NCBI RefSeq assembly: GCF_006345805.1 | Contig: NC_043009.1 | Coordinates: forward strand, 23,994,001 to 24,058,000 | Reading direction: 5' to 3' | DNA length: 64,000 bases | Source: Octopus sinensis | Lineage: Eukaryota | Shown here: positions 5,389-57,120 of the stretch, one piece after another | How positions within the stretch are numbered: the first letter of the stretch is position 1 | Layout: the number at the start of each line of letters is the position of its first letter | Notes under the pieces: model-generated | The model's database searches: none | Told to the model about the DNA's origin: nothing | Seen by the model: only the letters and a program-made list of their open reading frames with translations | Translations under genes and position numbers: made by a program

Positions 5389-5518
5389 ATGTCGAATTTT
5401 GAGCAGAGAAAAGAAATTGAGACCACGATTATAAAAATGAATGCAGTCTTCTACTTGGCCCTGGTGTTTGGTCTAGGGACATGTGGTGTGGTGAAAACGG
5501 AGCCAAAGATAAACGAAG
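5389..5518 (+). CDS. Paralog g1 exon 1: signal peptide (start at ATG 5389 or ATG 5437; MNAVFYLALVFGLGTCGVVKTEPKINE)
   Basis: Hydrophobic N-terminal stretch; ends GAA G|gtaagc (phase 1 donor at 5519); homologous to exon 1 of g2/g3 (EPK motif, shared upstream sequence). Confidence 0.8.
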
Positions 5519-5689
5519 GTAAGCACTGTTTCAATTCAATACAATATAGATTTTTTACAATATATATACACTCATGCACACAAGCGTGCACACTCATGCA
5601 GACGCACACACACCCACATACAAATGTATACGTATGTGTGTGTGTATACACACACAGACACACAAACACACACGCATATATATATACGC

Positions 5690-6150
5690 GCAGGCTAATG
5701 AGATCGCTAGTGATCTCAATATGCCTGTTTGCCTGTGAGACATGGACACTGGCTGCAGAAATCGAAAGAAGAATGCAGGCTACGGAGAGAAAATGTTTCA
5801 GACTTTTGGGAATGTCATAAAAAGATTGTGTCACAAATGAGGAAATGAAAAGAATAAGTCAGGTAATAGGGCCCTATGAGGAACTTCTTACTATAGTAAA
5901 GAAACCCAAGTTCGTGGAGTTTGGGCATGTCATCCACTCATCAGGAATGGCCAAAACGATCCTTCAGGGAACAGTCGAATGTGCCATACGCAGAGGCAGA
6001 CAAGGAAAAGAGGCGGGAAGACGACATCTGTGAGTGAACAGGCCTAAAAATGAAAGACGCAGTGCAAGAGGCAGAAGAGAGAGACAGGTGAAAGGATCTT
6101 GTCGCAACGTCATCAATGGCGCTCCTACGGTCAACCAGACAACGGGATAT
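5690..6150 (+). mobile_element. RTE-clade LINE 3' fragment in g1 intron 1
   Basis: SICLFACETWTLAAEIERRMQATERKCFR, FGHV...AKTILQGTVE...RRGRQ. Confidence 0.75.
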
Positions 6151-6831
6151 ATAATTTAATGTAATATATATTTATATATATTGCTGTACGTACAAAGTGT
6201 GCATTTGTACCTATATGCTACATTTTTATATATACGTGTGTATGTATGAATCTATGTACGTAAGTATGTCTGAATATATCTGTCTGTCTTTAAGTATGCA
6301 TACTAGCAGGCATGTATGTGTAAGTATGCACGTATAAAATGTGCATTTGTATATACATGCCACACTTTTGTATATATGTATGTATGTATGAATGTATGTA
6401 TGTAAGTGTATCTGCATATATGTCATTCTGTCTCTAAGTATGTATGTTAGCATGCATGTATACGTGTCTGTATGTAAATATGCAATTCTGTTAGTATGAT
6501 TATCAGCATATTCATGTTAACATTTCTATTCATTGGAAGATAGACAAGTATCTTCTTAGCTAATTACCTTCCTAGTAATATGTAACTAACTAATGCAAAT
6601 TGACAAGCTGGCTTTATCTATATCTATATATCTTCCTAGACGTTTACCTAAATATTTAGTGCGCTGTTTACCTACATATCTAGCCCTTTTACTGCTGAAA
6701 TCAGATAAATATGCTCAAAATTACATAACCCTTCACTGTGGAAAGCAGTTTTATATAACAATCTATCTTTTGTTGGGAATGTCATATTTGAAACTATGTT
6801 CTATTGATATATGTGAAGTTTTCTGAGGTAA

Positions 6832-7143
6832 AGTTGTTTTTGTTTGTTCCTTCTCGAGCCATGCCTGGCTCATATGGGTCGGTTTCTTGGTTTCTTTGGC
6901 GTATAGGTTCCCCACCTGGATGGGACGCCGGTCCGTCGCAAGTGACCTGCAAGATGCAGGAGGAAAGAGTGAGAGAAAGTTGTGGCGAAAGAGTCAGCAA
7001 AAGTTCGCCATTACCTTCAGCCGGAGCCGCGTGGAGGTTAGGTGTTTCGCTCATAAATACACACATCCACCGGTCTGAAATTCGAACACGCGATCTATCG
7101 ACCGCAAGTTCGCTGCTCTAACCACTAGGCCATGTGCCTCCAC
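6832..7143 (-). mobile_element. tRNA-derived SINE, third family (representative copy)
   Basis: gaggcacatggcctagtggttagagc...gttcga head; near-identical copies at 42440-42740(-) and 54690-54987(-); related heads at 33348, 34620-34950(-), 47495, 50150, 52300, 54495 and 60040. Confidence 0.8.
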
Positions 7144-54700: not shown

Positions 54701-55380
54701 GTTTGTTCTTTCTCGAGCCATGCATGGCTCATAAGGGTCGGTTTCCCGGTTTCCTTGGCGTATAGGTTCCCCACCTGGACGGGACGCCGGTCCGTCGCAA
54801 GTGAGCTGCATGATGTAGGAGCAAAGAGTGAGAGAGTTTGTGGCGAAAGAGCCATTACCTTCTGCCGGAGCCGCGTAGAGCTTAGGTGTTTCGCTCATAA
54901 ACACACACATCACCCGGTCTGAGATTCAAACCCGCAATCCCTCGACCGCGAGTTCACTGCTCTAACCACTAGGTCATGTGCCTCCACATATACGATATAT
55001 ACCCCTCAGTATTTTTGAAGCACTGCAGTTCATTGTATCAACTGAAAATTGCTGTCCTTGTGGATAAATCTGCGACTGTTATAAGGCGATGTATTTTCAA
55101 AATCATCTTAAGTTCGATCAAATTCATTAGACGTAAGTTTTCTAGGATTTTGCGTCTTGGGTTCAAATTCTGTACTTCGTCGCTTTCGGGATCTACAGAA
55201 TAAAATGCCTGTTAAGAATTAGGGACAGTATAACCGACTAACACCGTGTAGAGTTTTACCCATGTGATGTTGTTCGTAAAATCCCTTATTATTTCTATGA
55301 TTAATGACTAAAACGTAATATAAATGTTATTTATTCCAACTAAATGAAAAAAACATAACGTAAACAATTTCTTTTTTCAG

Positions 55381-55464
55381 TATGTGTTCGTATGGCAGCT
55401 TTTGAATATATGTTGCAATTCAGCATAGAATTAGGTGGTTTTGTTCTTATACATAGAACTTACC
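55381..55464 (+). CDS. Paralog g3 exon 3 (LCVRMAAFEYMLQFSIELGGFVLIHRTY)
   Basis: ttttttcag| acceptor, TAC C|gtgagt donor, 84 nt. Confidence 0.88.
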
Positions 55465-56800
55465 GTGAGTATCTTTCATGATATTAATAAAATAATCATA
55501 GATTTATTTATATTTTGTTTTTGTAGCAAACTGGTTTGTTTACCCGCTTTGTTGTAGCGTTATCTTATTTTTAAAAGGAATTATTTTGAGGTTCATTACA
55601 GAATTCATGGCAGACAGTTTCTCTTTCTCATCGAAGCTGGAGGCTTGCTACCTTCATTTCTCTCTCTCTCTCTCTCTCTCTCTCCTCTCTCTCTCTCTCT
55701 CTCTCTCTCTCTCTCCTCTCTCTCTCTCTCTCTCTCTCTCTGTTTCTCCAGAATAGTGCAAGGAGTTAAAATATTCTGACATTGTTTTTCTCTTTCACTG
55801 AGATCTATCGTCACTGCTTGGATTAATGCTTTCGTATGCAGCAATTTAAAAGCTGATTAAAACATTTGCTTTCCTCTTTCTTATCAACTTGAGACACATT
55901 CAAATTGGCTTTCTACGTTAGAGTTACTGTAATTAGGTTCAGAATAGCAACAATAATTATGATGGGGTTGTCAGCGACTAAACCAGCAACCCCACCAAGT
56001 TTGTTTGGGGAGAAAGTCGATGTTTCGATCCATTGCAAGTTGAAAAACTAAACCGGTCAACGGTTGGAGGAACACATAAGAATTAACGGCCATTCAACTG
56101 AGAGTATATGTTACTTGATGAAAACTCTCCGATCCTTGGTCGGCATGATGTTGCCACGATAAAATTATTGGTGATTGCAAAAGCTTATAAATGCTACTTG
56201 AAAGTGAGTGAAAATGTCAAATCCAAGTAGCCAGAATAACTACGTAAACGGGGCCTGAACTATCAACGGTGAAGATATTGTGTACAGCAGACATGGTTTT
56301 GGTAGACGGAAACTGAAAGAAGCCCGTCGTATATATGTATATATATATATATATATATATGTGTGTGTGTATATATGTTTGTGTGTCTGTGTTTGTCTCC
56401 CCAACATCGTTTGACAACTGATGCTGGTGTGTTTACGTCCCCGTAACTTAGCGGTTCGGCAAAATAGACCGATAGAATAAGTACTAGGATTACAAAGGAT
56501 AAGTCCTGGGGTCGATTTGCTCGACTAAAGGCGGTGCTCCAGCATAGCCGCAGTCAAATGACTGAAACAAGTAAAAGAGTAAATGAGTAGATATAATTGT
56601 ATTAGGTATAAGTAACGTATGTATATAATGAATATGTGTGTGTGTGCATGAGTGTATAAGTGCGTATATGGGTGCATTCGTGCGCAAATGCTGCGTCTGC
56701 AAGCGTGGATGTGTGTGTCTGTGTGAGAGAGAGAGAGAGAGAGAGAGTAATTTCTTTGCAGTATTTTTTCTCTAATTGCCATATATTATTAAATTTACAG

Positions 56801-57120
56801 ATGGTACTTTCTCCAAAACCTACTCATTTCATTATGGAACTGTACATATACAGTTTAAATTTGTAGTGGAACGTATTAGCCATCGTCACCTCAAGGCATG
56901 CTTCAAAATATCATATGAAGTTCAATCTTACCATTTCTCAAAGTCTCTCGGCTGCATAAACAAACATTTTCCTGCTATTGAAAATATCCACGTGAACAGT
57001 ATATCGGATTTGAGTTCGAATGGTAAAATTTCTTTTGAGGCACAAGAATTTGAAACTGGAAATCTTAACAGTATGGAATACCTTGGTGAAGAAAACCAAA
57101 ACAAAAATGTTCTCATTTAG
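56801..57120 (+). CDS. Paralog g3 exon 4 (HGTFSKTYSFHYG...KACFKISYEVQSYHFSKSLGC...NKNVLI*); spliced CDS 726 nt = 241 aa
   Basis: tttacag| acceptor; continuous open frame across the four exons (103+219+84+320 nt). Confidence 0.88.

Follow-up and report, generated by a model that had tools for sequence, protein, structure and literature searches.

To which family do three similar four-exon genes, arranged one behind another on the plus strand of an Octopus sinensis chromosome, belong, and what might their products do? The question is raised by a window of 64,000 nucleotides, CM016871.1:23,994,001-24,058,000 (taken from the locus coordinates); the window means this whole stretch, and positions are counted from its first letter. 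The genes, here termed g1, g2 and g3, are very probably adjacent paralogs within a tandem array, and sequence comparison places them in an octopod-expanded, divergent branch of the DUF4773 family. DUF4773 (PF15998) is a Pfam domain of unknown function which occurs in secreted invertebrate proteins. For g1-g3 the label holds by transitive homology and not by the Pfam threshold; judged by their relatives, they are members in the evolutionary but not in the operational sense.

Gene models

Translated in six frames, the window shows the anchor motif C-x-W-x4-G-x-C-[C/T] at three places, always on the plus strand (7419, 30119 and 51678), compared with a mean of 0.03 and a maximum of 1 in 100 shuffled controls. 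Each occurrence sits in an exon with a good acceptor and a GT donor. The remaining exons were located by cross-comparing the three anchor regions, and the models were then spliced as follows.

5389..5518, plus strand: g1 exon 1; ATG, a 16-residue charged extension and the signal-peptide core; spliced product identical to P0006
7261..7476, plus strand: g1 exon 2; acidic N-arm and the first two domain strands (MRCHWRAVLGNCT...); phase 1 at both ends
11973..12056, plus strand: g1 exon 3; 84 nt, phase 1/1; starts 'FS' where g2 and g3 read 'LC'
17743..18074, plus strand: g1 exon 4; remainder of the domain (C-x17-C), acidic tail, stop
27216..27313, plus strand: g2 exon 1; the only open model, with donor GTAAAG
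29971..30176, plus strand: g2 exon 2; N-arm and MRCSWNQNIGQCC; its acceptor lies 7 nt past the ancestral site (29964)
37201..37284, plus strand: g2 exon 3; 84 nt, phase 1/1
39199..39551, plus strand: g2 exon 4; domain end, acidic tail with ...NENENSLIWPKDAEKQRAN, stop
47176..47278, plus strand: g3 exon 1; putative signal peptide
51517..51735, plus strand: g3 exon 2; N-arm and MQCSWKGNAGKCC
55381..55464, plus strand: g3 exon 3; 84 nt, phase 1/1
56801..57120, plus strand: g3 exon 4; domain end and tail, TAG stop

The g1 model is identical to RefSeq XP_029644021 (P0006, 253 aa), isoform X1 of LOC115218383, which is annotated as an uncharacterized protein. The g3 model is likewise identical to XP_029644162 (P0001, 241 aa), entered in RefSeq as 'uncharacterized protein LOC115218468 [Octopus sinensis]'. 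The g2 model gives 246 aa and agrees with the annotated product by length only. An earlier note on this DNA had described three plus-strand paralogs of four coding exons each, and the spliced models, two of them equal to RefSeq proteins, bear this out: its limits, 5389 and 57120, coincide with the g1 ATG and the g3 stop, and exon 3 is 84 nt long in all three genes. Its statement that all introns are of phase 1 is true of g1 and g3 but not of g2 as the sequence stands, where the first intron is of phase 2. The claim that the genes are hidden from a single-ORF track has to be given up in a practical sense, all three being called in the public annotation and g1 and g3 matching RefSeq exactly.

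RefSeq holds two isoforms of g1, X1 with 253 aa (including an additional Ala) and X2 with 252 aa; exon 4 is preceded by a CAGCAG tandem acceptor (17735-17748), of which the second AG yields X2. As a separate observation, g1 has gained an upstream in-frame ATG (5389-5436) that places 16 charged residues before the signal-peptide core. The start region of the paralogs aligns with the next in-frame ATG of g1, at 5437, and the related protein P0003 starts at the downstream Met region.

Membership of the DUF4773 family

The assignment to DUF4773 runs through intermediate relatives. A profile hidden Markov model (HMM) made from g3, g1, P0003 and the exon translations of g2 was used in an exhaustive HMMER search of 1.84e9 representative proteins, which returned 19 proteins at E <= 1e-3. 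Among these, the cephalopod-like proteins P0019, P0020 and P0022 match the family HMM at E 1e-11 to 8e-9, and they themselves pass the Pfam gathering threshold for DUF4773 (27 bits) with 37.3, 33.3 and 37.0 bits, respectively. Since the octopod profile thus matches threshold-passing DUF4773 proteins, g1-g3 can be regarded as homologous to that family. When twelve octopod sequences were compared with the threshold-passing group in hhalign, the match reached a probability of 99.3% (E 3.3e-20, 191 columns), and the alignment takes in everything from the signal peptide through to the domain end. In a direct Pfam scan g2 gives a sub-threshold DUF4773 match (15.3 bits, E 0.028) in which its residues 83-182 cover profile positions 2-112 of 118. 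P0009 and P0012 have similar sub-threshold matches of about 15 bits, covering positions 9-101 and 2-112 of 118, respectively; the threshold-passing relatives match over the span seen in P0012. In all, DUF4773 is the Pfam hit of 6 of the 16 family members, and every other Pfam family is hit by one member at most.

Ten of the matches were looked up, and every named source proved to be an octopod (O. sinensis, O. vulgaris, O. bimaculoides or Argonauta hians). P0019, P0020 and P0022, which come from Logan assemblies of public sequencing runs, and P0023 carry no source species. P0018 (E 3e-15) was rejected as a false positive; it is 1558 aa long and contains 26 copies of a unit of about 60 aa with SCAWVFVWGKCCSY, and it is no relative but a translated tandem repeat whose units mimic the C-x-W...G-x-CC motif.

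The skeleton M-x-C-x-W ... C-x17-C(GC), which the earlier note had proposed as common to the three genes, is recovered by an exon-anchored alignment. The domain is colinear without gaps over 101 residues in g1-g3, from the anchor Met, which precedes the first Cys by two residues, as far as the GC that closes C-x17-C. Alignments of the three proteins by MAFFT, which placed gaps in the g1 domain, were dropped in favour of the gapless one, and MAFFT itself recovers the gapless alignment once P0003 is added. Domain identity is 46% between g2 and g3 and 16-19% between g1 and either of them, in keeping with the description of g1 as the most distant copy. The domain contains six Cys in g2 and g3 and four in g1, as against eight in the threshold-passing relatives of the P0019/P0020/P0022 type; the eight-Cys frame of this reference is not found in g1-g3, and the term 'Cys-reduced' is therefore apt. 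For the term 'DUF4773-like', the HMMER comparison with PF15998 sustains homology by way of the threshold-passing relatives, but leaves all three genes below the Pfam cut-off.

Extent and age of the array

The idea of a tandem cluster of three holds in so far as the genes are tandem paralogs, but the family has at least nine genes in O. sinensis, and these three belong to a larger array. A fourth paralog, LOC115218374 (P0003, 233 aa), has its gene 31-42 kb upstream of the window, and the final exon of one more paralog, similar to g2 and with a product of 245 aa, lies about 52 kb upstream (L002:1-594). This product is called on the contig and is missing from the protein collection, as is that of g2. 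The HMM search and cluster look-ups added LOC115218395 (P0027) and LOC115218502 (P0007) on the same chromosome, and LOC115227066 (P0015) and LOC115227065 (P0030) on an unplaced scaffold.

The arrangement can be followed in O. vulgaris, where P0029 (26.00 Mb), the g3 ortholog (26.19 Mb) and P0009, the ortholog of LOC115218395 (26.225 Mb), follow one another on OX597826.1. The clade of P0015 and P0029 lies 190 kb upstream in this species, where the family is also represented about 26 kb downstream, and the array spans at least 230 kb. P0029 (342 aa, 12 Cys; L008, OX597826.1:26,000,225-26,021,807) is evidently a P0015-like and a P0030-like gene fused into one model, and it is followed by an opposite-strand gene for 237 aa.

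The g3 ortholog of O. bimaculoides is annotated as two fragment proteins, P0010 and P0005 (L004, CM046613.1, 13773-14099 and 9989). Its exon 3 falls inside a run of N in the assembly, and its first ATG reads ATC, such that translation would begin at the second Met. Exon 3 of g1 is conserved at about 83% of amino acids in P0011, a 120-aa fragment from another species. As g1 and g3 both have orthologs or fragments in another species (P0010, P0005, P0011), the paralogs are old and have been retained.

Protein anatomy and predicted fold

The products of g1-g3, about 240-250 aa long, share one layout: a putative signal peptide, an acidic and mostly disordered N-arm, a cationic domain of about 103 residues and an acidic tail. 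An N-terminal signal-peptide-like segment can be read by eye in all three, which would agree with the designation 'secreted'. In g1-g3 the net charge of the N-arm is -5 to -10, that of the domain +8 to +10 (pI 9.6-9.9) and that of the tail -5 to -8. Across the family the corresponding ranges are -5 to -23, +1 to +27 and -2 to -20, with exceptions: the N-arm of P0013 is +2, and in the tail-less or short-tailed P0012, P0015, P0021 and P0030 the tail charge is 0 to +2. The tail ends in a conserved E-x-N-Q-N-E-N-S-L-x-W motif. The family alignments show no conserved dibasic, furin-type or R-x-x-R site at either domain boundary, and 'precursor' in the sense of a processed pro-protein accordingly finds no support.

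The fold was predicted with AlphaFold2, for g3 from the 16-sequence family alignment and for g1 in a separate run. In the g3 model the domain (residues 88-191) has a predicted local distance difference test (pLDDT) score of 93-97 and consists of nine consecutive β-strands joined by two-residue turns; both arms are disordered, with a low-confidence helix in the N-arm. The g1 model reproduces these nine strands with pLDDT 92-95, although identity is no more than 16-19% and g1 has two Cys fewer. With high confidence, the domain is thus predicted to form an antiparallel β-meander of nine strands. With the Foldseek comparison described below, the modelling that had been suggested for these proteins yields a confident meander with no significant neighbour in the PDB or in BFVD.

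Three cross-hairpin disulfides would fit this model, C89-C98, C99-C108 and C169-C187 (g3 numbering), the pairing being derived from hairpin register and DSSP strand boundaries, not from coordinates. The family alignment lends the map independent support, since C89, W91, C98, C169, G186 and C187 are invariant in 16 of 16 sequences, whilst C99 and C108 are lost together in g1, P0003 and P0013, g1 and its nearest relatives thus lacking the whole middle pair.

Rate and mode of evolution

Between O. sinensis and O. bimaculoides, synonymous divergence (dS) is about 0.15. Over this distance the ratio of nonsynonymous to synonymous divergence (dN/dS) of g3 is 0.47, with 0.42 for the signal peptide, 1.14 for the N-arm, 0.43 for the domain and 0.17 for the tail. 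For exons 3-4 of g2 it is 0.84 (domain 0.94, tail 0.70). All five coding differences from O. vulgaris (two in g3, three in exon 4 of g2) are nonsynonymous, a number too small for a test, and coding divergence from that species, 0.46%, is close to the intron rate of about 0.5%. The description of the genes as fast-diverging is thus appropriate in the sense of weak constraint (between-species dN/dS of the domain 0.43-0.94) but not in the sense of demonstrated positive selection.

Among the paralogs the domain is the least conserved segment. Between g2 and g3, DNA identity is 83% in the 100 nt upstream of the ATG and 60% in the domain, as against 75-83% in the untranslated regions and signal exon; the signal exon, the arms and the 3' untranslated region (3'UTR) are 70-76% identical among paralogs, and the g1 domain shares 38-41% with the others. 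Synonymous change between g2 and g3 is also higher in the domain (dS 0.90) than in the arms (0.32-0.40; Fisher p 0.0035), so that the contrast cannot simply be put down to positive selection there. The pattern of a variable domain between conserved flanks may with at least equal likelihood stem from gene conversion or from constraint acting on the flanks. Paralog comparisons involving g1 are saturated (dS 1.2-2.4), and their dN/dS values were set aside as not interpretable.

The first intron of g2

Exon 1 of g2 departs from the pattern of its neighbours. It measures 104 nt up to the ancestral donor position, versus 103 in g3; the ancestral donor (27319/27320) reads GC, not GT, and the ancestral frame meets an in-frame TAA directly before it. 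The sole open model employs a GTAAAG donor that precedes the ancestral donor by 6 nt and an AG that follows the ancestral acceptor by 7 nt, creating the phase-2 intron, whilst the upstream donor joined to the first AG leads to an immediate stop. Two other solutions were discarded, the homologous phase-1 donor on account of the in-frame TAA and the frameshift, and a weak phase-1 donor within the signal peptide, which gives 238 aa and not the annotated 246. The called product of the O. vulgaris ortholog has 250 aa, the length expected of an undisturbed phase-1 gene of 103+213+84+353 nt. Since that product fits the undisturbed length, we infer that the disturbance would be specific to this genome or to its assembly.

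It is possible, if doubtful, that g2 alone is a decaying or null allele in this genome, or carries an assembly indel, and that the 246-aa product is a rescue by the annotation. The extra base before the GC, the TAA in the ancestral frame, the immediate stop after the first AG and the undisturbed length in O. vulgaris would all be expected from such a history, as would a g2 dN/dS of 0.84-0.94 and the absence of the g2 protein from the searched protein collection, in which its neighbours are present. A complete 246-aa product is nevertheless called at the locus, and the downstream exons are open in each species: exons 2-4 in O. sinensis, exon 4 in O. vulgaris and exons 3-4 in O. bimaculoides.

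Flanks and stop codons

Conservation extends beyond the coding exons. Two non-coding features of g2 serve as reference.

27116..27215, plus strand: conserved block of the g2 5' flank and 5' untranslated region, with a TATAAA-like box some 110 nt before the ATG
39588..39593, plus strand: AATAAA of g2, homologous to that of g3 (57188-57193)

Blocks homologous to the first lie at about 5337-5436 (g1) and at 47076-47175 (g3), with 83% identity between g2 and g3 and 66-71% between either and g1. The AATAAA that had been noted as conserved is indeed homologous in g2 and g3, but g1 has CATAAA at that position and an ATTAAA 20 nt further on (18161-18166). The 3'UTR block around the poly(A) signal is 68-75% identical among the three genes.

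The stops of g1 (18072), g2 (39549) and g3 (57118) fall at three different points of one alignable tail sequence, which stays alignable past the early stops. That of g1 aligns with a GAG codon of g2, and the TAG of g3, which is present in O. bimaculoides as well, aligns with the TGG (Trp) of the ...S-L-I-W motif of g2. Because the TAG stands at the position of the Trp codon, the g3 tail is shorter and lacks the Trp.

Biological context and proposed function

Protein-level evidence comes from the skin mucus of O. vulgaris. According to PMC11431876, the UniProt entry A0A0L8GLC6, a 'DUF4773 domain-containing protein' of O. bimaculoides, was quantified there, and senescent animals had less of it (ratios 0.14 and 0.46). 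Of 31 positions of its N-terminus, MMTSAVFYLALMFSLGTCAVVNIVPEISEGK, 28 are the same in P0015; this sequence comes from an in-silico digest (supplement S8 of the same source), not from an observed peptide, and was used for identification only. On the strength of that match, A0A0L8GLC6 is a member of the same family and, in O. vulgaris, of the same array. In the oyster, a DUF4773 gene is among the ten top markers of macrophage-like haemocytes (PMC12064177). In the locust, a DUF4773 transcript, 600-fold up, is among the most abundant in the secreting pleuropodia, together with lysozymes (PMC6966819).

The best explanation overall, taking identity and mechanism together, has about an even chance of being right. 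The proteins would be released at epithelial surfaces or into mucus, perhaps by immune cells too, and there the cationic β-domain would bind anionic targets, either microbial envelopes or polymers of mucus and glycan, with the acidic arms serving to keep the protein soluble and to mask the domain. Duplication, combined with weak or diversifying constraint on the domain, may then have supplied a panel of binding surfaces on a single disulfide-fixed scaffold. The functional part of this proposal, that g1-g3 are extracellular barrier or defence binding proteins whose surface variants are furnished by the array, is tentative and falls well short of probable; the detection of a paralog clade in skin mucus fits a barrier or defence role. 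More speculatively, DUF4773 as a whole may represent an unsolved fold, a cationic β-meander of nine strands stapled at its hairpins, and a new class of invertebrate barrier or immune recognition proteins, with the octopod array as a diversifying panel of binders, in which the acidic arms and the C-terminal N-Q-N-E-N-S-L-x-W motif would regulate or anchor the binding domain. This extension is unlikely as matters stand.

A number of observations weigh against the explanation of g1-g3 as secreted DUF4773-type binders. None of the three reaches Pfam's own threshold, g1 and g3 giving no Pfam hit even at E <= 10. The signal peptides were judged by eye only, from a hydrophobic core followed by …CLGTG/A, …CLANG/A or …GLGTCG/V, and the disulfide pairs were derived without coordinates. 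Foldseek found nothing significant in the PDB (best E 0.05-0.08, TM 0.25-0.34, rmsd 7-12 Å) or in BFVD (best E 0.013), and a sequence search of the PDB was empty. The entries in the examined parts of the skin-mucus tables of PMC11431876 do not include g1, g2 or g3. The searchable literature holds nothing on them under their LOC or XP identifiers, nor were expression or protein data found; it is equally silent under the Pfam and InterPro accessions and under the sequencing runs (SRA) that carry P0022. No binding partner, activity or structural neighbour is known for g1-g3. Finally, a dN/dS near 1 together with a disturbed exon 1 makes g2 fit decay as well as diversification, and the elevated domain dS described above leaves gene conversion or flank constraint, and not selection for change, as a possible source of the variable-domain pattern.

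Other functions have to be considered on the same evidence. A structural role, in which the proteins would build up or cross-link mucus or some other secreted matrix, without recognition, and in which charge and scaffold alone matter, is unlikely, though it has something to recommend it: the paralog clade found in skin mucus declines together with mucins in senescent animals, most of the sequence is under weak constraint, and blocks of charge are conserved rather than residues. The conserved tail motif and the conserved blocks in the 5' and 3' untranslated regions, as well as the many distinct paralogs kept since before the split from O. bimaculoides, suggest instead that the copies have roles of their own, and repeats or low-complexity cross-linking motifs are absent. 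Somewhat less probable still are processed host-defence precursors, with the acidic arms as cleaved pro-pieces whose removal would release a cationic, Cys-stabilised antimicrobial domain. The acidic-cationic-acidic layout is found family-wide, reaching -23/+27 in DUF4773-positive relatives; the contexts of the members are mucus, haemocytes and a secretory organ; and conservation is higher in the signal exon and arms than in the domain. Against this, conserved dibasic or furin-type boundary sites are lacking (K-P-K-R occurs only in g2-type tails), and about 103 residues is a size well beyond that of typical antimicrobial peptides. The g3 tail, moreover, is the most constrained part of the protein (0.17), which would be odd for a discarded pro-piece, whereas the N-arm stands at about 1.1.

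A small-ligand carrier, in which the meander would close into an up-and-down barrel of the avidin or FABP type around a hydrophobic or vitamin-like molecule, is improbable. Avidins, streptavidin and fatty-acid- or retinoid-binding proteins do recur among the top non-significant Foldseek matches of both models, but propeller blades and tail fibres score equally, a spectrum that amounts to a generic meander. With E >= 0.05, rmsd 7-12 Å and a best TM of 0.25-0.34, the matches lie below the TM of 0.5 or more expected of an avidin- or calycin-type barrel, and a strongly cationic surface with quickly changing sequence would be unusual for such carriers. That g1-g3 form a venom or salivary toxin family is highly improbable and has no support. 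The resemblance is a general one (secreted, Cys-stabilised, tandemly duplicated and weakly constrained proteins); no toxin family was matched in Pfam scans or in sequence and fold searches of the PDB, DUF4773 is widespread in non-venomous invertebrates, and the sole protein-level detection of a member, in the portions of the source covered, was in skin mucus.

Repeats and mobile remnants

The DNA around the exons contains several repeats. Intron 2 of g1 holds a retrotransposon remnant on the minus strand (10320-11569) with adjoining open reading frames (ORFs) of 254 and 172 aa, the former with a sub-threshold hit (E 2e-4) to zf-RVT, a zinc-binding domain in reverse transcriptase, and the latter with a long AT-rich, poly-Ile stretch. 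Downstream of g3 there is a tandem duplication (57896-59681 and 62123-63929) with a period of about 4.2 kb and copies 92-98% identical, plus a 363-nt internal repeat (58593-59241). Within the duplicated stretch no exon of the family turned up. A GTAT microsatellite of 139 copies at 284-839 gives rise to six overlapping spurious ORFs (167-245 aa, both strands), and many AT, ATCT and TCT arrays lie in the introns, for example at 27374-27716, right after g2 exon 1.

Parallels with known systems and significance

A number of parallels can be drawn with DUF4773 as defined by Pfam. Both have an N-terminal signal peptide (a putative one in g1-g3), C-x-W...G-x-CC near the start of the domain and ...LGC[F/I] at its end; the g2 match is near end-to-end, and a paralog clade of the array is already named after the domain in UniProt. 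The differences lie in the score of g1-g3 (15 bits or no hit, below 27 bits), in the number of Cys (6 or 4, not 8) and in the acidic arms and the C-terminal N-Q-N-E-N-S-L-x-W motif, which are specific to the family described here. The label names a family, not a mechanism. The A0A0L8GLC6 clade (LOC115227066/LOC115227065, P0015/P0030), whose namesake is the only member with protein-level evidence in the parts of the literature covered, shares with g1-g3 the family (E 2e-21 to the profile), the O. vulgaris array, the putative signal peptide, the acidic N-arm and the layout of the Cys-domain. It differs in being about 25% identical to g3, in having no long acidic tail and in a near-neutral domain (+1 to +2).

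Secreted effector families, such as the conopeptide superfamilies and the precursors of amphibian skin peptides, combine a conserved signal and pro-region with a variable Cys-framework domain. The octopus genes resemble them in that DNA identity is highest in the 5' flank, the signal exon and the untranslated regions and lowest in the Cys-domain, and in having tandem paralogs with fixed Cys anchors and changing residues between. Unlike these families, they encode a β-sheet domain of about 103 residues, not a short peptide, and no conserved processing sites; dN/dS in the octopus comparison stays below 1 except in the N-arm, and gene conversion or flank constraint would be an equally good cause of the pattern. 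With the precursors of cationic antimicrobial peptides g1-g3 share an anionic pro-region beside a cationic, Cys-stabilised region, but not the conserved processing site between the pro-piece and the mature part.

Part of this picture was already available: the genes are called in the annotation as uncharacterized, the family is a known domain of unknown function, and one paralog clade bears its name. What is added is the link between DUF4773 and an octopod branch below the Pfam threshold, the wider reach of the array, the irregularity in g2, the charge architecture and the connection to skin mucus, together with a confident fold prediction that has no neighbour in the PDB and a disulfide map backed by correlated loss of Cys. 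In this respect g1 is a natural 'double knock-out' of one Cys pair and supports a disulfide map that is open to experiment. Nothing is overturned. An octopod expansion which current Pfam thresholds miss has come into view, and the sub-threshold octopod genes could now be annotated, making the family tractable for work on expression, binding and structure. Across the invertebrates, DUF4773 recurs in secretory and immune contexts, from octopus skin mucus to the macrophage-like haemocytes of the oyster and the pleuropodia of the locust.

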